This document shows, in pieces, positions 1 through 60,008 of a stretch of DNA of 64,000 nucleotides. Origin of the DNA: Mantamonas sphyraenae STR306 (taxonomy: Eukaryota; Protista; CRuMs). Within the stretch, counting starts at the first letter, position 1. Each line of letters starts with the position of its first letter. The stretch spans positions 278,177 through 342,176 of the forward strand of contig JAPMXV010000008.1 of NCBI GenBank assembly GCA_026936335.1, written 5' to 3'. Made by a program: the position numbers and the translations under genes. The notes beneath the pieces were generated by a model. That model did not search any database and had not been told where the DNA came from. It worked only from the letters and a program-made list of their open reading frames with translations.

Positions 1-3000
1 TCGAAGCGGGCCCTCGTGAGTCGCCAATCTTCCATCTCCTTGGCCAGTGTGCGCTCGGCCTCCTCACGCGCGAGGTCTGCCTGGTGTGCGTCGCGCTTGG
101 CCTTGCTCACGGCGTCAGTCTGGTTCTGCACCTTGTCCTGCAGTTGCGCCACCTGATGCGCCAGCTCGTCCTTGCCTGTGCTTGTCGCGTGTTGCAGGTG
201 CTTCAGCTTGTCCAGGGCGCTTGACAGCTGGCTAACCTTTTCCGTGAGGCCATTGATGGTGCGCTCGGTGCGCTCCTTGTCCTCGGCCAGCCGCTCTTCC
301 AGCGCCGCTTTTTGCTCGGCCATCTGACCGTGCTCCTTTGCCAGCTTCTCGTTGTGACTGCGCAGATGCACAAGCTCCTTGTGCTCTTTGGCCAGTTCTT
401 CGGCCACCTGCGCCGACTCGCGCTGCACGCTGTCCATGTCCGTGGCCAGCTTGGAGTGTGTTTCCTGGCCTCGCTTTTGCGCCTCCAACAGCGCCTGTTT
501 GAGCTCCTGCACCTGGCCATTGGCAGTGGACAGGCGCCACGTCAGCAAAATGGACGACTTGATCTTCTGGCGCCACTTCTGGCGGAAATCACCGGCCTGC
601 AGCTCGAGTTCGTGTTCGCGCTTCTCGGCCGCCTCAGCCGCTCGTATGGACGCCACCTTGAGGTTGTCCAGCTCCTTTTGTACGGCCTTGCGTGCATCCT
701 CTTCACGCTCCTGGGCCTGCGTCCACTCTTCGACGCTTGCCTGCAGGTTGTTGATGGTGCTTGTCATCTGCTTGCGCGCTCGGCCAACCACGTGTCCCGC
801 TCCACATCCATGGCGCGTGCTGTTTCGTCGGCAGCGGCCTCCAAGTCGGCAATGGTTGCGCGCAGCGTGGTGATCTTCTGGCGCATTTCCGTCTCTGCAA
901 CCAGGGTCTCGTTGCTCTGCTCCTTCATGCGCACTTGCACGCGTTGCATCTCCTCCTTGGCACTGTCGGCCTGCTGCTGGGCAGCCACGGCCGTGCGTTG
1001 GAAATCTTCCGCCTGGGTGGTGGCTGCGCGCAGCTGCTCCTGCAGGTTGATGTTTTCGTTTGTGATCTTGCTGAGCTCGTCTGTGAGCTGGGAGATCTTG
1101 GCCATGTTGCGTGCGTTGTGCTCCTCCATGGTGCTGCGCACTGTGGCCAGGGTCTTTTCCACCTGTTGCTTGTCGTGAAGCACGGTGGATGTGTTGCGGT
1201 GCAGAGTTTCGATCTTGGTGGTCGCCTTGCTGAGCTCCTTGTTCAGGTTGTCGCGCGCCTTGATGTACTCCTTGAGCTTGGACTTTTGCTCGCCCAGAGC
1301 CGTCTCCAGCCTTGCACGCTGCTTGACTTCCTGCTCATACTTGCGGTTGAGCTCGTCCAGCTGGCGAACACGCTGCTTCTCCGCTCCCTGCGCGTCCGTT
1401 GCCTTCTTTTGTGCTTCGCGCAGCTCGTGCAGCTGTGCATTGCCCCGTTTGACCTCCTGCTCGTACTTGCCTTGCCACTTGGCCGTGTTGCCGCGCTCAC
1501 GTTCGACGTCGGTGAGCGCCCGCTGCAGCTGCATCTTGAGCTCAGCCACCTCGTGCGCGTGTGCACGTTCCTTGGCCACCTGAGCTGTGCCCTGCGACTT
1601 GAGCAGCTGCTGGGTTTGCTTGTGCTCAGCGTTGGCCTTGCTCAGCTGGTCGGCCAGGTCTGCGGCGTGAGCTGCGTTCTTGTCACACGCCGCGGTGATG
1701 CGCGCAAGTTCGCGCTCCAGACGTTGGTTTTCGCGCTCCAATTCCTTGCGCGCTGTGTTGAGGTCGCCCTTTTCGGCGCTGGCCGCCTTTTCCTGTGCAC
1801 GCAGAGCCAGGTTCCTCTCGTTGATCTTGATCTGGCTCTCCTCCAACTCCTTGTGGTAGATCTCTGCCTGCTCCTGTGCGCTGCGCATGGCACGCTGCAT
1901 GCTCTCCTTGGCCACAGTCTGTTGTGCAAGCTGGTTGCGTGTCTCTTCCAGGGCCGCGCGCAGCTCCTTGATGTCTGCACTTTGGATCTTGGCGTTCTCC
2001 TCGTGCGTCGTGTGCATGGCCTCTGCCTTGTGGCGCTCTGTCTCCAGAGTGCGCACTGTGTTGTCCAGTTCCTTCTGCAGGTCTGCTGCGCGGTCGCTCA
2101 GCAGGTTGCGCTCTTTGTTGACTTCGTTGTAGCGCTGTTCGAGTTCGTTCAGATTTGTGCGCACGGTGAGGTGGTCGTGCTGCAGCGCAGTGTGCGTGCG
2201 CTCCAGGCTCTCAAGCTTGCTGGTGGCAGCTTCGGCGGCGTTGGTCTCGCGGCGAAGCTGATCCTTGAGCTCCTGCAGGGAATGCATGCCCTCCTGGATC
2301 TTGGCCTGGGCGGCCGCAAAGTTTGCGTCCACTTGCTCGCGTGCACGCTTGGCGTGTTCCACGGCTCCCTCGGAAGCCTTGAGCTTGGTCGCCAGCTGCT
2401 TGTTGCTGTTGGCAAAGTGGGTGACCAAGGCACTGAGTGTTTCTTGGGCGGAACGCAGATCCGTGCCCTTGACCTTGCGTGTCAGGCTGACAGGCAGTGC
2501 GGCCGAGGACGATGCGCCCGACGACTGTTCACCAGCCAATGAGGCAGCTTCCTCCTGCAGGGAGTGGACAAAGGTCATGAAGCTGCTGATGCTCTTCTGG
2601 GCGTTTGTGCGCTGGCGTTCGGCGTTGTCAACCTCAAACTGCAGCTTCTTGTAGTCTTGGCTGGCCTGGGCCAACTCGTCCTTGAGAGAGGCGGCCAGTC
2701 GCTCGGTTTGCTCCAGTTTCTCGCGCTTGCGCTGCAGCTCCAGGCTCAGCGCATCGCGCTCTCGTTGCAGCCCACCGACGTCCGCCTGCAGACGCTGGTT
2801 CTCAGCGGTGCTCTGGAGTGGTGCGCGAAGGAGGAGGCGCAAGGGTACGCGGCCACAATGTGGATTTTGGTGAGTGAGTGTGAGGGCGCGTGTGAGCGTG
2901 TGCGAGGGTGGACGGGGGGAAATTTTTGACATGGGCGACAAAAGGACCGTGTGTACAGGGTGGAGTGTGGCGGAGGGCCAATGGATGGCCTGCACAAAGG

Positions 3001-3969
3001 GAGATGCAGAGTCGCTGTGGATTGGATGTGCGTGTGGACAAAGGGTCCGGGGCTGGTTCGGGATGGAGGGGCGGGTTGGGCGCATGTGGCCGTTGGCCGC
3101 GTCGGACAAAGATTGCAAAAGGGGCAAGGAAGGGCCGGAACTCACCTTGTTGAGGTCGTTCTTGATCTGGCGGTATGCCAGGCGCTCATTCTCGAGGGTA
3201 ATGTCACGCTCATTGAGGGTGGCGGCGTACTGGTCTCGCTGGTTGATGGTGGCCTCGAGCTTATCTGAAAGGGCCTTGATGGAGCGACGGTGCTCCTCGT
3301 TTTCCTTCTCGCGTGTCTGGTTGAGGCTGGTGTTGTTGTAACTGAGCGAGTGGTTGGTTGCTTCCATGGCCTTGAGGCTGTCCTGGTCGGCATTGACCTG
3401 CTCCTCAAGCTGCAGGATGACCTGAGAGGCCTCTTGCAGTTTGCTGCGAAGCGACGTGTTTTCAGCCACGACTCCGTCCAGAGTTTCCTCCAGGCCGGCC
3501 TTTTCGGCGTGGGTGTTGCGCAGCTGATCCTTCAAAGATGCAGCTCCACCTGTGATGTGCACACGAGGTGGCGAGCGCGACGAGTCACCGTAGGTGAACG
3601 AGTTGGGGCTGCCGCGTGACGAGGCAGAGGGGCTCGAGGGCGAACTTGCGCGCAACGAGCTGTAGCTGCTGCTCAGGGAGCTTGCCGTCGAAGCACGCGT
3701 CTTTGCAGATTTCAGCGCGCGTCGGCGCCGTTGTTGCAGTTGCTGCTTCCGGGTTTCCGTCTCCTGCATCATCTGAAGCAAGCGAGAATCGGTTTCGCCT
3801 TCGCCATCTGCACGGAAAATCACCAGGGGGTGCGCCAGCGTGACACGCATCGAGTGCACAGCAAGTGTGTGTGTGTGAGTGATGTGCAGGCAAAAGGCGT
3901 GACTAAGAAGCGGGGGCGTGCAAACGTACATGACGATGCCGAGCCGAGGCTACTGCTGAGATCGCTCAT
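1..3969 (-). CDS. Large coiled-coil protein (centrosomal/cytoskeletal-like); 3' end runs off the window; apparent frameshift near 775
   Basis: Exon 1 MSDLSSSLGSASS (3969-3930); GT-AG introns ~3929-3808 and ~3145-2813; long E/Q/K/L heptad-rich ORF; coding-like sequence continues to position 1 in another frame after GAGCGCGCAAG. Confidence 0.8.
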
Positions 3970-8370: not shown

Positions 8371-10151
8371 TCACCCAGACAGCGCGATGCCATTCAGAAT
8401 CAATTGGTACCCTTCTGGCACCTCGTCATGCGCCTGCACCAGCGCACAGATCTCCTTCAGGTCGTCGCTGACGCCCTCGAAAAAGTCGGTGAGGTAGAGC
8501 AAGAGGTGGAAGTCCGAGATGCGATCGATGTAGCTCTTCTTGCTGTTGGTGAGCTGGCCCTTGAGGTCCTGCACAGTGGGAGCCACCAGACGGTTGGATA
8601 CGGGAAAGGTCTCGTGGAGCATGCCGTCCTCGTAGGAGATTGGCACAGTGACAAGGAAGATGTCGTTGTCCACTTGCGTGACCTCCTTCAACTCCACCAG
8701 CACGGGGATCTTGCTGATGTACGAGAAGGCGAGGTTGTCGCCGTCGAGCGGGTCGTCCAGACGGTCTTCCTTGGCCAGAGCCAGGGCCTGGTCGGAAAAC
8801 TGGTATCCTTCTGCGCTGAGGCCACCGTCGCGCTGGCCTGCAAGGATGGTCACAAAGGTGTCGCTGTTCTGCAGCTGCAGCATGGCGCCTCGCTTCACTT
8901 CCCACGCACTGGCCACGTAGTTGCGTTCGTCGTGCGACTGGATCCAGCCCACCCATTCCATGCCCAGCGCCTCCACCAACTCGTTCACAGTCGTCTCCTT
9001 GGGGTCGTCCAGCAGGTCAAACCTGCCGTCATTGAATTCCTGCGGCGGTTCGTAGATGGCCTGCACCACCACTTCCGCCGTCTCTGTGTCGTCGTCAACA
9101 AGCACGTGGCCAAACAGAAAGCCCAGCCGGTGGCCACCGTACTGCTGATAGTACGTACCATATTGCCCCAGGGCCGCCTGACTCACTCGGATCTTGGTTG
9201 TGAACGAGTCTGTCTGGGGCTTGAGCTTGAACTTGCGCTCCTCCTCGCGCGACAGGCAGGCGATGCACGAGCCATTGGGACCGTGGTTCGAGCAACGCAC
9301 CTTTTCCGGCTCCTCCTCAAGCGTGCTGGGCAGGCAGTTGATGCACATGTCACGCGGCCCATGCTGGCACCTGTTCTTGTCCCTTTTTGTGTCTCGGCGC
9401 ACCCTGTGTGTGTGCTTTTCCTTGGCTTCCGCCTTGGCCGACTTCTTCACGCGAGTGCAGTTCGGGCACCGCGCGTTTGGGCCGTGCGTACACAGCCAGC
9501 GGATCTCCGTGCCTGGGCGCATCAATCCCCCACACACACATACACATACACACACGTGATGTCAGGCAGATAAAGGCCACCCGATGTCCGTGTCAGTTCC
9601 GTTGCCATGGCCTGCAGCAGAATTCCGGCCGGAAAACGCGTGGCTGCTTTCTTACCTTTGTAGTTCTCGGGCATGCAGTTTGCACAATACGAACGGCTGT
9701 CGTGGTTGCACTTCATCTTGCCTTCGGCCAGTTCCAGGTCCTTGCAGTTGATGCAGTTTTCGTTGGGGCCGTGCAGACACTTGGGTTTGATGCTCTTTTC
9801 GTTGAGGGCGTGGCCTTGTTTGCGTGACGACGACGATGACGACGACGACGACGACGATGAAGATGAAGAAGACGATGAAGATGAAGACGACGATGACGAC
9901 GACGACGACGATGACGATCCACTGCCACTCGCCTGCACGTACAACATGTCACCGTCCTCAAAGCCAAAGGTGCCGATGCGCGAGCTCGCGTCCAGCACCC
10001 CGCTCATGTTGGGCGTCTGCGCAAGAGTGATCGATGATGCGGTTGTCTTGTACACTTCGGCCACTTGCTGCATGAGAGCAAGCACCTTGGCCTGGTCGTC
10101 CATTTCAAACCGTTGTGTGCCTTCCTTGCCACGAACGCGCAAAAGCACCAT
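8371..10151 (-). CDS. NPL4: NPL4 (p97/Cdc48 cofactor): Ub-like N-terminus, repeated CxHG...CxxC zinc motifs, MPN domain
   Basis: MVLLRVRGKEG; CLHGPNENCINC-type repeats; RLGFLFG, AIYEPPQ, VGWIQSH, ISDFHLLLYL; intron ~9656-9513 (GTAAG). Confidence 0.9.
9827..9920. repeat. GAC/GAT/GAA trinucleotide tract encoding poly-Ser in NPL4
   Basis: About 30 consecutive TCG/TCA/TCT codons on the minus strand. Confidence 0.95.
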
Positions 10152-40177: not shown

Positions 40178-40240
40178 AGGGGGAAGCAATGAACTGCTGA
40201 GCTGCAAAAACAGTTTGTTTGTTGGATTGGCTCATGTGGC

Positions 40241-49740: not shown

Positions 49741-52245
49741 CTACGCCGATTGCATGGTCACAGCAGCGCTACCCTTGTTGTTGGACTTGTAGACGCCGAG
49801 AAGGTGGGGCATGCGAGCGTAGAGAGATGGGCGATGAGAGATAAAGAGGAACTGGGCAGCGTCGGCGTGCTCGTGCAGCCATGTGGCCATGCGTGAGACA
49901 ACGTGGCGGTCTAAACTGGCGTCCACTTCGTCGAGAATGAAGAGAGGGCAAGGCGAGGCGCTTTGGAGGGAGAGCAGGAGGCTGATGGCAACGAGTGCGC
50001 GTTGGCCTCCGCTCAGCTGATGGACGTCTTTCCAGCCGTCATGGACGTTGGACTGCATGCGGACGTAGACGCCGTGCTGGAACAACCCCACAGGGTCGGC
50101 GACATATTGGAACTGGACCTGCATGCCAGCACTGAGGAAGCCAAAGACGCGCTCGAGATGGGCGGTCTGCGTGGCCAATCCAGAGTGGAACATGGCAAAC
50201 CGTTGTTGTGCGAGCTGTTCGGCAGCGTGAAGCCACTCGTGCATACTCTTGGCCAGAGTGCGCTTGTCCTTCTGCCTCTGTGTGTGTTGTGCATCGAGTT
50301 CAGCTGCTTTGCGAACGCAGTCGCGGTCGACCGAGACATCCAGGGCATCGTGCGCTCGTTTGCAGCTGCGCAATTGGCCGCTGAGAGAGGCACAGAGACT
50401 TGCAAGCTCTCCGCTTGGCAAATCTGGGTGTGTATCCACCGCGAGCTGGTCGATCTGCTCGAGGTTGGACGTGGTGTGGGACACCTGGCGTCGCAGCTGG
50501 GAGACCATGTGCTTTGCCGTGGCTCGGGTGCGCTCTTGTTCGTCGTGGCGGTGATCGAGCTGTCGCAGCTGCTTGCGCATTCGTGTAGCTTGATCTCTGG
50601 CCTTGCGCAGGTCGCGGTGCAGGAGTTTTTCTTTGGGATCGAGAGCAGCCGTAAGCTGGGACAAATCGGCCTGAAGGGCGTCGAGCTGCGCTGTGGAGTC
50701 CACTTGAAGTGTGTTGTGGTTGTGTACGCTGCTGAGACTCTTGGTGACGGCTCCGTTCCAGCGAAAGATCTCGCCAGCAAGCGTGACAAGGTTGAGGCGC
50801 GTGTGTGGGTGCTCGTGCATCCAAAGAGCGGCTGAATGTGCAGTGTCGACGATTGCCCAGGTGTGAGTGTGGCCGGAGATGACTGCGTGGAGCTTGGGGT
50901 CAAAGGATAGGGCGTCGATGAGAGCGATGCCTGTGCTGGAGTCGAGGAGTGTTCCGAGGCTTCGGAGATGATGTCGCAGCATACCCAGCCCAAGTTTTGG
51001 CGCTTGTGGTCGCGGATGAGTTGCAGGGCGTCTTGACGGGTGCGAACGACGACGTGGTGACGGAGCTGCTTGTGCAGTACGGCGTGGACGGCGCACTGGT
51101 ACTGAGAGTCGGTCACACGGACCAACTGAGACCAAGGACCGGTGCAGGTGGAGCGGTACGTGCTGCGCTTGCGCTTGAGTGCGCGGATCTGAGATTGAAG
51201 GCGACGGATGTCTGCCGCGTTTGTTGAGGCAAGCTGGCTTTGCTTGAGCGAGTTGATGTGTTGCTCCACACGCTGGAGATCGCTTTGCAAGGCGTTCTTT
51301 TCTGTGTGGATGCCTTTGAGCTCCGCAGAGGCTTCGTGAAGGGCGTCGGTTTGTTTGCGCAGGTCGGTTTGTTCAGCCGCGAGCTGCTGGGCCAGATCGA
51401 CTCTGCGCCTGGCGCGGATGGAAGCCTGCACGGCTTCCGTGTCGTCACGGAGGTTGTTCAACTGTGTGCATAGATTTTCGAGGCGATGGAGGTCGTCGAG
51501 CTGTGCTTGGATGGCGGTTGTCTGCTTCTCATGTTCGCGATCGGCGAGTTCGAGCTGCTGGAGAGATGTGCGTGCCTGGGCGGCTTGCTCGGAGGCTTGG
51601 AGGGCTTGGTCGTAGAGTGTGCGTGTACCAAGGCATCGTTCCAAGAGATCGAGGGTGCGGAGCGGGTCAGAGAGCTGGGCGGCGGCATCGGCGCTTTGGA
51701 GGATGACGAAGCGATCGGGGTGTTGCATGTCGATGTTCATGTCAAAGAGAAGGGCGTGGATGTGCGACAGGGAGCAGGAGTCGAGGTGGACATCAAAGTC
51801 GTCAAACTCGGGATGGTCGGCAAACAGCAGGTCAGCGGAGGCACATTGGGAGCGGCGGCGATGAATAGAGCGTCGCAGAAGGAGGAGACGATGCTCGCAG
51901 ACGATGCGAAGAGTGACAGAGGCGCCCTCGGAGGCTGGGCGAGGGTGTCAGGATCTATGGAAAGTGAGCGATGGATGCGGGGAATTGGAGCAAACGCACG
52001 GGTGGCGAGGGAGCGATGTCCCAAGGCAAAGCAGATGGCTGTGGGAGGATTGGCGGAGTGTGTGAGCTGCCGCAGTGTTGGCCATGTGTTGGCGGATAGG
52101 ACATTTGGCAACCTTGGACGAGTGTGCTCTTGCCTGCGCCGTTTGCACCGACGACACAGTTGATGGAAGAAGACAAGGGGCCAATGGTGTGGGGAGATGT
52201 GAACGAGGCAAAGGCATGAATGTGAACAGAGTGGAGGTGTGTCAT
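49741..52245 (-). CDS. Divergent short-armed SMC-family ATPase with apparent frameshift near 50935
   Basis: Walker A VVGANGAGKS; AICFALG; Q-loop FVILQS; hinge-like GPWSQLVRV...YQCAVHAVL...HVVV; signature LSGGQ; Walker B FILDEVDASLD; ISHR; introns ~52112-52040 and ~51999-51935. Confidence 0.82.
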
Positions 52246-53783
52246 TTAGATGGCCGCGTCTGCGATTTGCTGCAACACGCGGGCGTGCTGGTGGAGAACG
52301 TGCGCGTTCTCGCCGCCTATGCCTTCGATGAGAGCAGAAAAGGGAGAGGCGCCGTTCTCGACCTGAGTCTTGAGCTGGTCGTAGGCGGTGATGTCGATGC
52401 GTGCCAGTTGCATGTCGACAGACATGCTTGTGACCCAGGTTTCCGCAACGGGGTTCAGGTTCCAGCGCTTGTTGAGCTTTGCCTCGAGGTCGCGCATGTG
52501 TGCAGCGCCATAGAGAATGGCTACGCTGGGTTCGTAGATGCGTTCGTTCTGCCAGAGCTGCTGCCATTCGGGGAGGAGGCGCTCGATGTCCGCGATGACA
52601 ATGTCGTTGCGCTGGTCGATCATGACCTTGTAGACGGGTGCAACGTGCTTCTTGTTGTGGACTGCCTCGAGGGCAAGCATGAGGCCGAGCTTGAGGCGTT
52701 CACGCTGGTCGAGGTGGCCCTCGACTTGGTCGATGAGGTTGTGTACTTTGCTGAGGGGCTCGCCAAAGACGGTGGTGGGCTGGTCGATGCTCTGGCGGTT
52801 GGACTCGACAAGGGCTGCGCCGAGAGAGGTCATGTCTGTGTCTGAGTTGACAAAGTGGCCCTGGGTGTAGTCCATGCTGGTGACCTGGAACGCGAGGTCG
52901 AGGGCCTTGGCCAAGCGGACCTGAGCGACGGCGACACTCTGGGTAGCCTTGATAAAGGCAAACGAGAGGTCTGTGTTGTTTCCTGTGCCGCCTGGGAGGC
53001 CGTCCTGTCCGTAGGAGAGGAGGTTGAAGGTGGCGTTGCTGTGGCTGTACACAAAGGGGCGCCCCCAGGCGTCGTCAAAGATCACTTCCATGCGCTCTTC
53101 CCACATGGGCATCTCGCGGACGCGTTGTTCAAAGTCGTCAAAGGTGGCGGGCAGTGATTCGTCGGGGTGTTCGACCATGCGCTCTGCAAAATCGCCGAGG
53201 ACGAGGAGGCGAGCGAGGGTGATTTGTACAGCACGCTGAGAGGAGAGGGAAGGGGCATTGGGTCAGTGGCAGGGGCGGGAGAGTGGAGAAGGAACGGGTG
53301 GGGTGGACGTACGGATTCGTGGGGCTGGACAAGCTCGTAGAGAACGAGGTCCTGGTCGTTGAGCATGGTTTGCAGATAGCCGTAAGCCTCTGGTTCTGCA
53401 ATGTGCGTGGAGGCGGCGAGCACATAGGTGGGCCCGGCGCCTGTCTTTACGTTGCGGTAGGTGCGTGCGGCGAGCTGGAGCTTGATGGTGCTTCCCTGGC
53501 GCTTGACGCGGATTGCGGGCTTGCCGAGGCCCATATGGCAACGGGAGAACAAAATGGCGTCGGAAGGCATGCGTTCCTTGACAATCTCTTCGGAAACGCG
53601 AAGGAAAGAGAGAGCGAGGGCGGCGGAAACGACAATGGCGGTGGCGACGACGGTGATCATGATTTTCTGTGTGGAGGTGAGGCTGGAGGCAGCGTTGAGG
53701 CGGGAGTAGCCTCGGGTGCGCCTGTTGATGGAGAACTGCCGGGTGGTCGGGTAGGCTTGGCCGACGTCGGCGTCGGAGTGCAT
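52246..53783 (-). CDS. Membrane-anchored TraB/GumN-like protein with an inserted GspG (T2SS pseudopilin) C-terminal motif
   Basis: N-terminal TM; STHIAEPEAYGYLQ...DLVLYELV; DAWGRPFVY...LLSYGQDGLPGGTGNNTDL; RNDIVI...VAILYGAAHM; phase-0 intron ~53311-53237. Confidence 0.7.
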
Positions 53784-53838
53784 GGGCGGGGAAGCGGGGA
53801 AAGGTGTGGGGTGGTCGGGGCGGAAGTGCGCGGGAGGA

Positions 53839-53870
53839 GGCAAGAGGCAAGAGGCAAGAGGCAAGGGCAA
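53839..53870. repeat. (GGCAAGA)n tandem repeat in a 92-bp divergent intergenic region
   Basis: ggcaaga x3 plus two degenerate units between the ATGs at 53783(-) and 53876(+). Confidence 0.8.
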
Positions 53871-53875
53871 CAAGG

Positions 53876-54871
53876 ATGAGCGAACGAGAGGAGGACAAAG
53901 GAAAGCAAGAGAGTGGGAGGAAGAGGGAGGGGAGGCTGGCAAAGTTCCAGTTTGACAACTTTGAGGAGATCAAGAAGGAAGGTCGGAGCAAGTGTGCTGG
54001 GTGCGGGTCGATGCGCAACCGGTACTGCTGGAAGTGCCTGAAGCTCGTGGGCAACGTGTCGTTGTACCCAGAGGTGCGGCTGCCGCTGCCTCTGCACATT
54101 GTGCACCACCCGAAGGAGCTACTTTCGAAAAGCACGATTCCGCATGCTCTGGCGCTGAGCAAGGACGTGACGCTGCACGAGTACGGGCAAGAGACGTTGG
54201 AATTTGATGCAGAGTCGACGGTGCTTCTGTACCCGAGCGAGGAAGCGGTGGAGGTGGAGGAGGTGGACCTGGCGCGGGTCAAGAGGATTGTGGTGATTGA
54301 TGCGACGTGGACATTGGCCAAGAAGGTGGCGCGGGACCCTGTGTTGCAAGCACTGCCTGCAGTGAAGCTTGGGTCACAGTACCAGACGCTGTTCTGGCGG
54401 TTTCAGGACATGGGAAAGCAGTTTCTGGCAACGATTGAGGCGATCTACTACCTGTACAAGGAGTACACGCGTGCGTGGGAGGCACGGGAAGGCAAGACGT
54501 GGGACAGCAACCTGGACAACCTGTTGGTGCTGTTTGCAGCGCAGTACTGCAAGATTCAGGAGACGTACAGGTCGAAGAAGCGAGCGTTTTCGACGATTGA
54601 AGGGTATGTGGAGTATTCTGAGGATGAGCTGGCACATATGGATGTTGCGGACATGAAGATGAGGAGGAAGCGGGTGGCACATCTGCTGCACAAGGAGAAC
54701 ATGGAGAAAAGGAAGCAAGAGCACAAGCGGCAAAAGGCGATGGAGAGGGCTGCGAAGAAGGAGAGGGAGGAGAGAGAGGAGAGGGAAGTGGGAGAAGAGA
54801 TGGAGGGGGGCGTTGGCGTAGAGAAGGTGACGGGGGCCGGGGAGGTCGGGAGCGCGAGTGGAAGCAAGTGA
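53876..54871 (+). CDS. DTWD1: tRNA-uridine aminocarboxypropyltransferase (DTW domain)
   Basis: CxxC...YCWKC zinc motif, HPKE..SKST, LLYPS, VIDATW, TLFWR, LATIEAIY, DNLL. Confidence 0.9.
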   Translation: MSEREEDKGKQESGRKREGRLAKFQFDNFEEIKKEGRSKCAGCGSMRNRYCWKCLKLVGNVSLYPEVRLPLPLHIVHHPKELLSKSTIPHALALSKDVTLHEYGQETLEFDAESTVLLYPSEEAVEVEEVDLARVKRIVVIDATWTLAKKVARDPVLQALPAVKLGSQYQTLFWRFQDMGKQFLATIEAIYYLYKEYTRAWEAREGKTWDSNLDNLLVLFAAQYCKIQETYRSKKRAFSTIEGYVEYSEDELAHMDVADMKMRRKRVAHLLHKENMEKRKQEHKRQKAMERAAKKEREEREEREVGEEMEGGVGVEKVTGAGEVGSASGSK

Positions 54872-54874
54872 AAG

Positions 54875-57862
54875 ATGAACGCACCAAGAGTTCGACGATT
54901 CGTGGCGCGTCGCACCGCATGGTACATGAGGCCGGGTCTGAAGGCGGATTTGTGGATCCATGACCTGTTCTTCCGGCATGCGCTGCGCGTAGGGGAGCGG
55001 CCAATGGTGTTTTTGGCGGTGTCGCTGGTGCTCGTTTGTCTGCCGTTGGTGTACATGCCACAGATGCTGAACCTGCCCAGCAGTCCATCGGAGCTGCTGA
55101 CGGACTTTTCGTCGGGCGCATACACCGGAGCGAGGATGTTTGGACGCTCCCGGCAAGCTGTTCTGCTGGCGACACGGAATGCAGCGTTTCTGGGGGCCCA
55201 GCGTGACGGGATGCCAGGGAATGGGATGGATGTGCGGGTGTTGGATGCAATGTGGGACGCACGTCAAGTGGTGATGGAGACAAAGCATGTGTTTGCAGAT
55301 GGGACGAGCAAAACGTGGTCGGGAGATTTTTGCGCAACGAGGACGCCCGCCGAATTGAGGCAGCTGGGAGAGAAACAAATGGCACGGCGAGGGAGCAGTG
55401 CAGAGTGTGTGGAAACGTCGATTCTGAACGTTTGGGCGTCTCGCGCAGCCTACAGCAACGATACGGACCCGCTGGGAACGTTGAGAAGGTCCGTCTTTGG
55501 AAACGGCACGCGGGTCCGCTTTGCAAGTGGAGGGAGCGAACAGCTGAACAGACTGGCGTCCGGCGTGGCGTGGAACTCAAACGGGGAGCTGGCAAGCGTG
55601 CGCGTGTGGAGGTCGCTGTTTGCATTGGCAGAGGTGAGTTTTGAAAAAGTGAGAAAGAAGGAAACGAGATGGAAGGTTGGAGAAGGTTTTCCAGACACGC
55701 GCTGACAAAACGGCCGCAGGTTCCTGACGACGAGGCGTACAATGACTTTGCGATGGAATTGCCCAAGTGGCTGTACGACGTGGAGAAAGCGGTGGAACCT
55801 GTGGGAGAAGGCGCAGGCGTGGGCATTCTGGTTGGAGCAGACGTGAGTTTTGGTGGTGCGGGGGCCCCAAAGAAGGAAATGCTGACACGGACGCGCGAAG
55901 TTTGAGCAATATCAAGTGGGAAGCGTGCTGTTAGACTTTATCGTGTACGTGACTGGGGTCATTGTGTACTGCGCGGCAGTGGGAATCCGGTGCAAGCGGG
56001 GCGGGCACACGGTTGTGTTCTTGGCAGGCGTTGCGTCGGCGGCGCTGAGCGCCGGGTGCGCGGCTGGCCTCTACGTGGCGGCGGGGTATGAAGGCCACAC
56101 ACTGGTGTTGTACGGCGCTGGTGTGGTGGTGGCCATTGGGATTGACGACGTTTTCATCATGTTGTCCAGCGTGTCGCGTGTGGTGGACAACAACCCGACA
56201 CGACGCCTCGCACGCGGGATCTCCGAGTCGGGCACGGCGATTTTGATGACGACGCTGACGGATGTGCTGGTGTTTGGTGTGCCCATCATCATGGCGGGGT
56301 CGTCGCCACATGTGGTGAACATGGGCTTGTTTGTGACGTTGGGGTTGGTGATCGATTTTGTGACGCAGATGACGTTTGTTGTGGCAGTGATGTTTGTTCA
56401 GCTGAAGCGTGCCGAGCATGACATCGAGTCGCAAATCAAGATGCATGCCCAGCGGACAACCGGGGTGGTCGAGGTGGAAGCGCTGGGCACGGAAAACACA
56501 GCGACGGCGACGCAAAGAGAGTCGCCGAGGGTGGTGCAGGTGCAATCCAAGGTGCTGTCGGAGAACGGGAGCCAGGTGGAGTTGGAAGACGACGATGAGC
56601 TGATGGAACAAGACGACAGCTGGCTGTCGCACGTGATGGCGACGCATTACGTGCACTGGGTGCAACAGAGGTGGTTCCACGTGGCGGCGCTTCTGCTGCT
56701 GGTTGTGTTTCTCGCAGGCAGTGTGCACACCCTGGTTGTGAGCCCTGTGGTGGCGGTGAACGATTTGGACATGGTGAAGTGGGATGCAACGCCGCTGCTG
56801 CGGTCGCGGGACATCGAACTGAAGGAGTTTGGGCCGAGCGCCATGGTGATGAAGGAGCATCTGTTGGTGTTGCAGGAGACTCGATACTGGGAAGCAAACA
56901 CTCAGAGCGCACTGTCGAGCCTGTGCAGGCGTGTGGAGGCGTCGGGGAGGGAGGATGTGGCGTGCTGGTGGAGCGCGTTTGTGCAGTGGCTGAATGGGAG
57001 CGCCGTGGCGTCGGACGAGAGCGGGTTCGGGGCACAGGTGAAGCAATTTCTGGAGGTGCAGAAGTGGGCGCGCAACAAGGTGATGTGGACGGCGGACGGG
57101 AAGCGAGTGGTGGGATCGCGACTGAGCTGGACATCTGGGTACGACGCATGGGTCAACGGCACACTGGATGGATATGCATCGATCAAAGCGGTTCTGTTGG
57201 ATAAAATGACGGCGGAGGAGAAGCGATTGAGCAAGTACGACTCGATCCACGTGCAAACCGCGCTGTCGGCGGTGGAAGGGGCGGACCAGCTGTTGCTGAA
57301 CAGCGTGGTCAGCGGTCTGCTGGTGACAGCCGTGAGCATGGTGCTGCTGGTGAACCCGCTGACGAGTCTGCTGGTGCTGGTATCGATGTGGTCGACGGCG
57401 CTGTGTTTGTACGCTTCGTTTTACTTTCTGCCGATGATCAACGTCAACCTGACGGTGATCTTCTTTGGCACGTTTGCGGTTGGGTTCGGCGTGGACGCGA
57501 CGGCTCATGTTGTGCACCACTTTAATGTGACTGCAGGGACGGTGCACGAGCGCCTGCGGTTGACATTTGCTGCTGTGGGTGGCTCTGTGATCCACGGCGG
57601 AATGACGACGGTGATGTCGTTGGTCGTCCTGTGTTTCATCTCGCATCGAGCGGTGGCGTTGGTGACGTTTCTGGTGTTTATTCTGTCGACATTGCTTTCG
57701 CTGGCGCTGGCGTTGGTGTTGGCGCCTGTGGTGTTGCAGATTGTGACGCCGCCGCCGGCGCTGCGGGATTTGCAGATGCACACGTCGATCAAGGAGAGGG
57801 AGAAGAGGAGACTGGAGAGGATAGGGATGAAGTATGTGGGTGATGTGGGTGCGCCGCAATGA
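54875..57862 (+). CDS. Patched/NPC1-like sterol-sensing RND transporter
   Basis: Two TM bundles; AIGIDDVF (TM4), GTAILMTTLTD, VGFGVDATAH (TM10), GGSVIHGGMTT; introns ~55634-55720 and ~55842-55900. Confidence 0.85.
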
Positions 57863-58417
57863 ATGGTGCGCAAGCAGGACAAACACAATTGGCGAATTGG
57901 AGAGATGGACCGAAACGGTAGGTGCAGTGTCGGCCCCTGACCTCCTCACGGCGATCCTTGCCGGTGTAGCACCCCTCCCCACCCACCCAATCACCCTCGG
58001 CAATGTGGTTGGTGGGTGTGCTGCGGCTGTGTTCAACCAGCTGCTCCGTTTTGGCGGGAGGAAGGAAGCCAGGTTGCGCCAAGACAAGGCGGCGAGGGTC
58101 GTCGTGCTGCCCCCGTGCACCACAGCAGGCAAATGGTGGGCGATCAATCCAGTGTCTCACTGTGGGATGCGTAGGAAGGCGCATCGGACAGTCAGCAAAC
58201 AATGGGACGTCGGGGCTGGGAGGGGAAGGGTCTTGGGTGGCGCAGTGGCAGCAGGCAAACGCCTCTAACAACCGGCACATTCTCACAGAGTCTGAATCTG
58301 AAGGTAGGCAGAGTGGGTGGTCAGAGAACGTGCTGGAGGGACTGTAGATGGAGAGGGGGTGGGGGGGGGGGAAGGAGGGTAGCGCATACAGTGCTCACAA
58401 CGGGCAAAGCAGACGAT

Positions 58418-59999
58418 ATGAGCTCGGTGGAGAGGGATGAATGGCTGGAATTGCTGCAGATCTGGGATTATGCACGGTTTCGTAGAACGCTGGCAGCGGG
58501 AGATGTACATGTACGCGCGATGGAGGTGTTGCATGTCAAGAAGTGGATGAAGGGCAACAAGGGAGTGTGTGCTGACACTTGGAACACAGAACTTGTGTAT
58601 CAATGGCGAGGAATTAGGTGTCAATGAGGCAGTAGCGCTGGCCGAGGCGCTAGAGAAAAACATCAGCTTGCGGATGTTGGACCTCAGTTTCAACCGCATC
58701 AAGGACGCAGGAGCGGCAGCACTTGCGCAGGGATTGAGTGGAAACAGCAGTTTGCAGATGCTGGACCTCAGTTACAACAGCATCAAGGACGCAGGAGCGG
58801 CAGCACTTGCGCAGGGATTGAGCGGGATCAGCAGTTTGCATACACTGTTCCTCAGCCACAACAGCGTCGGGGACGAAGGAGCCACGGAACTGGCACATGC
58901 ACTGAGTGCGAACAACAGCTTGCAGAGACTGTTCCTCAGCCACAGCAGCATCGGGGACGAAGGAGCAACAGTGCTGGCACATGCACTGAGTGCGAACAGC
59001 AGCTTGCAGATACTGAAACTCAGCCGCAACAGCATTGGGGACGAAGGTGCAACAGTGCTGGCTCATGCAATGAGGGAGAACAGCAGCTTGCAGACACTGA
59101 ACCTTAGCCGCAACAGCATCGGGGACGAAGGAGCAGCAGCACTTGGGCAGGCACTGAAGGAGAACAGCAGCCTGCGGATGCTGGACCTTGGACACAACTG
59201 CATTGGGGCAGAAGGTGCATTGGCACTGGCGCAGGCACTGAGTGAGAACAGCAGCAGCTTGCAATTCCTGAACCTCCCGAGCAACAGCATCGGGGACGAA
59301 GGAGCAGCAGCACTGGCGCAGGCCCTGAGTGAGAACAGCAGGTTGCAGACACTGAACCTCAGCGGCAACAGCATCGGGGACGAAGGAGCAGCAGCACTGG
59401 CTGAGGCACTGAGTGAGAGCAGCAGCCTGCAGACACTGGAGCTCATGAGCAACAGCATCGGGGTCGAAGGAACAGCAGCACTGACAAAGGCTATGCAAGG
59501 CAATCGGTCGTGCTGGCACATCGTGGGCCTGAGAAGGGGCACCGTGCAGTCGATGTTGGAGAGAAACAAGAAGCAGCACGTGGAGTTTGTGGAGTGTGGG
59601 GATGTGGAGAAAGTGGCTGCGTTGAGGGAGTGGGGTGTGCCTGTGGACACGTTTGCAGGGGATGGAGGTGAAGAGACTGCGCTGGAGCGAGCAGTGAAGC
59701 GAGGGGATGAGGGGATTGTGGATGTGTTGCGGGGTTGGGGAGCGACGCCGAGGATGGAAACGGTGGAGATGGTGAGAGAGGAAGGGTGGAGGAAGGCGTG
59801 GCATTGGATTGGATGGGGTGGATTGGTGGAGGAGGCGATGGAGGTGGCGTTGGTGATGAACGGGGAGGAGAGGGAGGCGATGTTTGAGTGTGGAGGGATG
59901 GAGGCGTATGTGGAGAGAGGACGGTGGGAAGGGTGGGTGACACTGCCGGATGAGGTGATGGAGAGGGTGGTGGAGTGGATGGGGAGGGGTGCGGAATGA
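58418..59999 (+). CDS. Ribonuclease-inhibitor-type LRR protein with C-terminal ankyrin-like repeat
   Basis: About 11 repeats of 28 aa, NSSLQTLNLSRNSIGDEGAAALAQAL; ETALERAVKRGDEGIVDVL; phase-0 intron ~58511-58589. Confidence 0.88.
58655..59500 (+). repeat. 84-bp tandem repeats encoding LRRs
   Basis: Recurrent aacagcatcggggacgaaggagca at ~84-nt spacing. Confidence 0.9.
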
Positions 60000-60008
60000 A
60001 GGGGTGGT

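Follow-up and report, generated by a model that had tools for sequence, protein, structure and literature searches.

In the genomes of microsporidia and nucleomorphs (PMC3629993, PMC6009652), intergenic DNA has shrunk to tens of nucleotides (nt) or to nothing, abutting pairs of genes are functionally unrelated, and transcripts are forced to begin within the gene upstream or to end within the gene downstream. For microsporidia, PMC3629993 states, with reference to Williams 2005 and Corradi 2008, that transcripts which overlap often have their beginning in an upstream gene or their end in a downstream one. Here we describe a comparable locus of Mantamonas sphyraenae STR306. The window, 64,000 nt of contig JAPMXV010000008.1 (positions 278,177 to 342,176), is the right end of chromosome C8 (342,176 b, telomere to telomere) and is closed by TTAGGG repeats. 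Within it, two tandem gene pairs diverge from a single 92-nt spacer: a TraB/GumN-like gene followed by an SMC-like gene on the minus strand, and a DTW-domain gene followed by a Patched-like gene on the plus strand, with 0 and 3 nt, respectively, between the upstream stop codon and the downstream ATG. We consider it probable that these are four separate nuclear genes, each with its own mRNA, whose transcription units overlap. Mantamonas thus resembles microsporidia and nucleomorphs in its minimal intergenic DNA and in the unrelated functions of its abutting genes, and the forced overlap of transcripts is, for Mantamonas, proposed from sequence. Unlike those parasites and endosymbiont remnants, it is free-living, with a genome of 25 Mb, about 9,400 genes, 12% repeats and retained introns.

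Two further kinds of system offer themselves for comparison. The polycistronic mRNAs of green algae resemble the Mantamonas pairs in that the genes are nuclear and contain introns and the distances between open reading frames (ORFs) are very short (PMC7896298); the algal mRNAs involve no spliced leader, and none is reported in the M. sphyraenae genome paper (PMC10492846). However, the algal cistrons are small and leaky scanning is favoured for them, whereas the upstream ORFs of Mantamonas comprise 486 and 331 codons with many ATGs; moreover, single transcripts and both proteins have been demonstrated in the algae (PMC7896298), whereas a shared transcript of a Mantamonas pair is hypothetical. 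Termination-reinitiation in viruses is likewise similar to the Mantamonas junctions, in that stop and start codons lie a few nt apart after a long upstream ORF. It is represented by the termination upstream ribosome-binding site (TURBS) of caliciviruses, by the UAAUG of influenza B M1/BM2 and by the UAAUG of hypoviruses, and it depends on 40S subunits being tethered by an element further upstream. In contrast, the Mantamonas genes are cellular, and no tethering element was seen before the TraB-like/SMC-like junction when its sequence was read.

With regard to 3' ends, polyadenylation signals fused with the stop codon are known from Trichomonas (UAAA) and Giardia (AGURAA-type), and in Blastocystis stop codons are made by polyadenylation. 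The hexamer AATGAA, described below, is like these in lying at the stop codon or within about 30 nt of it and in often containing it (AA-TGA-A); unlike them, it also holds an ATG and can overlap or mimic the next start codon.

The CRuMs, to which Mantamonas belongs, are a deep-branching and barely studied eukaryotic supergroup. The words intergenic, UTR (untranslated region), overlapping and polycistronic do not occur in the M. sphyraenae genome paper (PMC10492846), and a literature search returned no paper connecting Mantamonas with intergenic, UTR, overlapping-gene or polycistronic topics. As Mantamonas is a free-living heterotroph, extreme compaction with forced transcriptional overlap would not be confined to parasites and endosymbiont remnants, and the two junctions provide the cleanest homology-anchored test cases for distinguishing overlapping units from dicistronic mRNAs.

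The two gene pairs and their junctions

The initial annotation of this DNA had described a symmetric divergent cluster, with in-frame junctions of 0 and 3 nt on either side of a 92-nt spacer and with introns in both downstream genes. The sequence bears out the junctions and the spacer, and introns are predicted in both downstream genes. The left junction reads GCC ATC TAA ATG ACA CAC on the minus strand (stop 52248-52246, ATG 52245-52243) and the right one AGC AAG TGA AAG ATG AAC on the plus strand (stop 54869-54871, ATG 54875); the spacer separates the TraB-like ATG at 53783 (minus) from the DTW ATG at 53876 (plus). The features are as follows.

49741..52245, minus strand: SMC-like gene with short arms and several exons, ATG 52245, stop TAG 49743-49741 (Pfam, PDB)
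52113..52245, minus strand: SMC-like exon 1, 44 codons + 1 nt, with Walker A motif GANGAGKS (homology)
52039..52112, minus strand: predicted SMC-like intron 1, 74 nt, GTTGCC...CAG (frame and homology)
52243..52248, minus strand: junction 1, TAA ATG, 0-nt spacer (sequence)
52246..53783, minus strand: TraB/GumN-like gene, 486 codons, ATG 53783 to TAA 52248-52246 (Pfam T2SSG 3e-7 and homologue)
53312-53236, minus strand: predicted TraB-like intron, 77 nt, GTACGT...CTGAC...CAG (GT..AG, frame)
53784..53875, no strand: divergent spacer, 92 nt, G-rich on the plus strand (sequence)
53876..54871, plus strand: DTW-domain gene, DTWD1-like, 331 codons, single exon, TGA 54869-54871 (Pfam DTW 3e-19)
54867..54879, plus strand: junction 2, AG-TGA-A AG ATG AA, 3-nt spacer (sequence)
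54875..57862, plus strand: Patched/sterol-sensing-domain gene, ~947 codons, TGA 57860-57862 (Pfam)
54875-55633, 55720-55842 and 55901-57862, plus strand: Patched-like exons (sequence)
55634-55719 and 55843-55900, plus strand: predicted Patched-like introns (GT..AG, frame, homology)

Introns were predicted from GT..AG boundaries, the branch-point-like CTGAC, a restored reading frame and homology. Gene searches were run exon by exon, and exons were joined solely for checks of frame and length.

At junction 1, the downstream start is fixed by homology. The SMC-like protein has the N-terminal Walker A head, the hinge and the C-terminal signature and Walker B motifs of its family: Pfam returned SMC_N (2e-23), SMC_hinge (1.7e-4) and AAA_23, the C-terminal head matches, up to residue ~457/464, the SMC4 and Smc heads (1e-19) and the SMC1 heads in PDB, and the translations contain RFVILQ, a coiled coil, a hinge, LSGGQ and ILDEVD. 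The arms are far shorter than canonical SMC arms. Residues 2-42 align to residues 2-42 of the archaeal SMC of Pyrococcus and to residues 3-40 of SMC3, and position 2 of the Pfam SMC_N profile falls on residue 4. Because the in-frame codon upstream of it is the TAA stop, ATG 52245 is the sole possible start; true starts lying well downstream, a possibility that the initial annotation had raised against its own reading, do not apply to a gene anchored at this position. The removal of intron 1, the donor of which is atypical, restores GANGAGKSTLVQ followed by AICFALG (GAGKSTLVQ to AICFALG), the canonical SMC continuation. For the upstream TraB-like gene, the Pfam match to T2SSG (3e-7) is weak and a single homologue, P0030, was detected, with 29% identity that includes the ILYGAxHM motif. 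Beyond the aligned region, 48 residues remain in the TraB-like protein and 42 in P0030, and this similarity in tail length places the TraB-like stop where it is expected.

At junction 2, the DTW protein has homologues of 33-44% identity, and conservation stops near residue 250; its last ~80 residues form an unconserved K/E-rich tail, which may double as a control region of the Patched-like gene. The Patched-like protein matches the Pfam families Sterol-sensing (4e-19) and Patched (5e-15). Its residues 5-17, which lie upstream of the only alternative methionine (M18), align to residues 6-18 of P0033, a foreign homologue of 1116 amino acids; an exhaustive HMMER search found the foreign homologues to be collinear with the Patched-like protein from residue 5-10 (P0032 from residue 10), and about 20 paralogues at other M. 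sphyraenae loci align from the equivalent of residues 5-16. These alignments make it likely that translation starts at ATG 54875. Exact-protein look-ups for the DTW protein, P0033 and P0032 gave no records, and a word search with the large Patched-like exon found nothing among 8,000 candidates, at which number the candidate list was saturated.

With gene ends that are anchored by homology, neither a 3' nor a 5' UTR, nor a promoter or poly(A) site, would fit between the ORFs, and either the RNAs are shared or these signals are embedded in the adjoining coding sequence. The initial annotation had offered precisely these two possibilities; as logical alternatives both hold, and the evidence leans to buried signals. 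It had also called such junctions bacterial or viral in style, which is an overstatement, as genes that abut or overlap also occur in eukaryotes with compacted genomes.

Gene packing and a 3'-end motif on chromosome C8

The M. sphyraenae assembly, made with FALCON, comprises 25.06 Mb (25,061,354 b in total) in 78 contigs, with 59.19% GC and TTAGGG ends, and carries 9,416 genes with a mean length of 2,282 bp and 12% repeats (PMC10492846); gene count and mean length together imply a genome that is ~86% genic. All packing and motif statistics given here refer to one chromosome, C8 (342 kb), and to crude ORF-based calls. These came from a classifier of reading frames whose training set was 22 Pfam-verified window segments and which recovered the correct frame in 22/22 segments on leave-one-out. 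ORFs that reach 100 codons and bear a coding signature make up 79% of C8. Convergent stop-to-stop distances are mostly 2-120 nt and cluster at 36-46 nt (those that separate Pfam-verified genes in the window are 37, 44, 63, 92 and 97 nt), tandem stop-to-ATG distances grade without a break from ~0 to ~100 nt, and divergent distances are overestimated because the ORF calls missed 5' exons. Intergenic DNA is therefore nearly absent in all orientations. Among neighbouring ORFs, 89 pairs share a strand and 80 do not, and neither strand clustering nor shorter spacers within units, the traits of operons, emerged on C8 from ORF calls of this crudeness. Since convergent pairs, which cannot share a transcript, are equally tight, the squeeze at 3' ends is general. 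The two junctions are best understood as an extreme case of this genome-wide compaction rather than as a special operon.

They nevertheless stand out on C8 because both sides of each are anchored by homology, and they are its only junctions of at most 3 nt between clearly different families. By our estimate, which is not a count, a genome with ~4,700 tandem pairs would contain one or two such double-tight sites by chance, if a few per cent of the pairs had at most 3 nt and several hundred divergent sites had tandem neighbours on both sides. Among the metagenome contigs searched with both junction sequences, none carried either of them.

The most enriched hexamer after stop codons is AATGAA, with 19 occurrences in the first 60 nt against 0.77 expected. 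In the 285 nt upstream of 131 stops there is no copy of it, and 25 copies fall between -15 and +30. Of all 73 copies on both strands, 27 adjoin a sense stop and 6 lie in sense coding sequence, which occupies 37% of strand positions; with up to one mismatch, the motif is found at -6 to +48 of 58% of stops, compared with 14% of coding-interior controls. TGA accounts for 101/131 stops (77%) and is often the TGA within AA-TGA-A. Copies in the window are found at the following positions.

57858-57863, plus strand: AATGAA, containing the Patched-like stop TGA
59995-60000, plus strand: AATGAA, fused with the stop of the gene after the Patched-like gene
40188-40193, plus strand: AATGAA
8366-8361, minus strand: AATGAA
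42698-42693, minus strand: AATGAA

From its position and its depletion in coding sequence, we infer that AATGAA is a candidate poly(A) or 3'-end signal, in which case 3' UTRs would be very short. Both junctions contain near matches. In junction 1 the ATG sits in AAATGA/AATGAC, and in junction 2 the stop lies within AGTGAA and the start within GATGAA, each one mismatch from AATGAA. Of these variants, AGTGAA is clearly enriched near stops (6 versus 1.0 in coding-interior controls), AATGAC is weakly specific (3 versus 1.3) and GATGAA is not specific (5 versus 3.7). The presence of variants at the TraB-like and DTW stops suggests that both genes may end their own transcripts.

Proposed overlapping transcription units and the alternatives

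If the four genes have separate, overlapping transcription units, as we propose, the intergenic DNA of the two tandem pairs would have been lost through packing in an ultra-compact genome, and each gene would still produce a capped, polyadenylated mRNA of its own. The SMC-like and Patched-like genes would have their transcription start sites in the final tens of nt of the upstream coding sequence. Cleavage and polyadenylation of the TraB-like and DTW mRNAs would take place a few tens of nt into the downstream coding sequence, under the direction of AATGAA-type signals overlapping the stop and start codons. The coding tails upstream of the two starts are free of ATG for 165 nt (SMC-like) and 69 nt (Patched-like). 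Compaction in all orientations, together with the lack of strand clustering, leans towards overlapping units over a shared mRNA, and the long, ATG-rich upstream ORFs (19 ATG triplets in the TraB-like gene and 15 in the DTW gene) argue against leaky scanning. The published transcriptome, with 9,255 contigs of 2.2 kb on average (PMC10492846, which also lists a poly(A)+ paired-end RNA-seq run), is close to the gene set in number and length, a weak indication that most assembled transcripts hold one gene.

Several observations weigh against our proposal. The ATG-free tails do not exceed chance expectation (P ~0.12 for the SMC-like gene and ~0.35 for the Patched-like gene). Neither the TraB-like nor the DTW gene has an exact AATGAA, and the variants at their ends are on the whole weakly specific, which makes read-through into the downstream gene plausible. 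No promoter or initiator motif could be defined upstream of C8 starts or in 15 divergent spacers, from a set of 'first ATGs' that is contaminated by internal exons (as betrayed by the branch-point signal ACTGAC), and the internal promoter in the upstream coding tail is assumed. In addition, the 0-3-nt geometry is also exactly what termination-reinitiation needs.

That mechanism underlies the most serious alternative, which we regard as rather unlikely: two dicistronic mRNAs driven by a bidirectional promoter in the 92-nt spacer, with the downstream ORFs translated by termination-reinitiation (UAA-AUG; UGA-AAG-AUG). The spacings of 0 and 3 nt, between stops and homology-anchored starts, are those used by calicivirus, influenza B and hypovirus termination-reinitiation; exact AATGAA is missing from the two upstream genes and present at the end of the Patched-like gene; and the two tightest verified junctions of C8 flank one spacer. 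However, ribosomes would have to reinitiate after ORFs of 331-486 codons, and reinitiation after such long ORFs is normally very inefficient in eukaryotes. TURBS-type reinitiation calls for a motif complementary to helix 26 of the 18S rRNA within about 100 nt upstream, and no UGGGA-type tethering motif was seen in the 100 nt before junction 1, a weak test made by reading the sequence. Nor do C8 neighbours cluster by strand, convergent pairs are compacted to the same degree, and the four genes share no function. Polycistrons resolved by a spliced leader, as in kinetoplastids and nematodes, involve a leader RNA gene and an AG acceptor ahead of each downstream ATG; a scan confined to the window gave no Rfam match, no leader is reported in PMC10492846, and the AG closest to the SMC-like ATG precedes it by 16 nt, within the TraB-like coding sequence. 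The broader version, in which some abutting pairs of Mantamonas yield dicistronic nuclear mRNAs by termination-coupled reinitiation and an AATGAA-like element chooses between 3'-end formation and read-through, seems to us unlikely; if true, it would mean that a lineage branching near the base of Amorphea has a polycistronic system that is cellular, neither of viral origin nor dependent on a leader.

The other alternatives concern the genes themselves. Junction 2 might be looser than it appears, with the Patched-like protein starting at M18 (ATG 54926) after a 54-nt spacer and ATG 54875 being merely part of the 3' motif of the DTW gene. The first ATGs within 30 nt of a stop on C8 are indeed mostly AATG(A), better-spaced starts favour C-ATG-T, the stretch of 17 codons ahead of M18 has a non-coding score (-0.34), and past the Patched-like stop AATGAATG looks like a TGA-ATG junction but is followed by no gene. 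We nevertheless find this improbable, given that residues 5-17 align with P0033, that P0032 and the ~20 paralogues also align ahead of M18 and that M18 is itself an internal residue of the MRPGLK.DL motif conserved in P0033; the argument is moreover inapplicable to junction 1, where the SMC-like start is anchored. For junction 1 alone, one could invoke a bacterial operon that arrived by horizontal transfer, was later invaded by introns and survives as a relic. TAAATG is common as an operon junction in bacteria, the SMC-like gene is atypically short, and P0030 comes from a metagenome contig of bacterial type, on which genes overlap and its neighbour is pilin-like. Yet no SMC gene adjoins P0030, the SMC-like head has eukaryotic SMC4 and SMC1 along with prokaryotic Smc as its closest matches, the plainly eukaryotic DTWD1-like/Patched-like pair has the same geometry, and tight packing is found genome-wide, all of which leaves an operon relic very improbable. 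Least credible of all is in-frame readthrough, which would produce TraB-SMC and DTW-Patched fusion proteins. It had been put forward in the initial annotation, and both junctions are in frame, but nothing in our analysis supports it. With only two junctions the shared frame is not significant, the N-terminal strand of the SMC-like protein begins at residue 2-4, as in free SMC proteins, and the fusions would make no biological sense. Junction 1 also has a UAA followed by A, which is among the strongest termination contexts.

Apparent junctions, start-codon context and other features

The tight junctions of C8 do not form a sharp class, and we rejected that notion because several of the 13 ORF-level candidates with at most 30 nt are artefactual. 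Two candidates with TGATG, in NPL4 (window 9522-9527) and in nicastrin (L015 8826-8831), are each a single conserved gene that is likely split by an intron rather than two abutting genes. Such intron-split TGATG cases mimic -1 overlaps of the prokaryotic kind and would inflate counts of 'operon-like' junctions. Pairs of cadherin-like and of coiled-coil ORFs on C8 may likewise be single (giant) genes. From window 767-3949 into L021 (C8 266,078-282,125), three long coiled-coil ORFs of 1061, 531 and 3758 codons follow each other and overlap twice at ATGA; either they are separate genes, or a single giant gene is interrupted by introns or frameshifts. A supposed third junction past the Patched-like stop, where AATGAATG is followed by ORFs of merely 20-25 codons, was also discarded.

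The context of start codons differs with spacing. In tandem pairs with spacers of 31-150 nt, starts favour C-ATG-T (CATGT at 9/19, versus 9% of all ATGs); examples are CACATGTCC and CCCATGTTT, and the leaders just upstream tend to be C/A-rich. ATGs at most 30 nt past a stop are mostly (A/G)AATG(A/G), and in the tight cases an ATG of better context often lies 50-100 nt downstream, beyond a stretch that scores as non-coding. AATGAA holds both ATG and TGA, and because the first in-frame ATG after a stop often belongs to the AATGAA of the upstream gene, ORF-based starts and 'operon-like' junctions need to be checked by homology. One chain of four ORFs (L003/L004, C8 95,732-98,803, minus strand) has stop-to-ATG spacers of 8, 9 and 10 nt. 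Its first member is the E2 component of a 2-oxoacid dehydrogenase; the ATG found 8 nt past its stop is part of an exact AATGAA, with a CAC-ATG-T start 60 nt beyond.

Some features of the window and of the chromosome remain to be recorded. In the divergent spacer, four tandem GGCAAGA heptamers occupy 53839-53866, directly upstream of the DTW start. The N-terminal module of the Patched-like protein recurs in the ~20 paralogues across the genome, some of them in tandem (for example C5:100398-100673, C51:47343-47903 and C69:211008-217100), and these are predicted to be an expanded family of sterol-sensing-domain proteins. The ~690 nt past the Patched-like stop (window 57863-58550) hold neither an ORF with a coding signature nor an Rfam match, a stretch unusually long for this genome. 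Finally, GC skew on C8 tracks the chromosome end independently of the direction of transcription. Over the final 37 kb (C8 305,000-342,176; window 27,000-64,000), the plus-strand skew at third codon positions is +0.26 in plus-strand genes and +0.38 in minus-strand genes, and in the first 50 kb (1-50,000) it is -0.13 and -0.23, respectively, with values of ~0 in the interior. The G-rich strand thus points 5' to 3' towards each telomere, and the choice between G3 and C3 codons flips with gene orientation.

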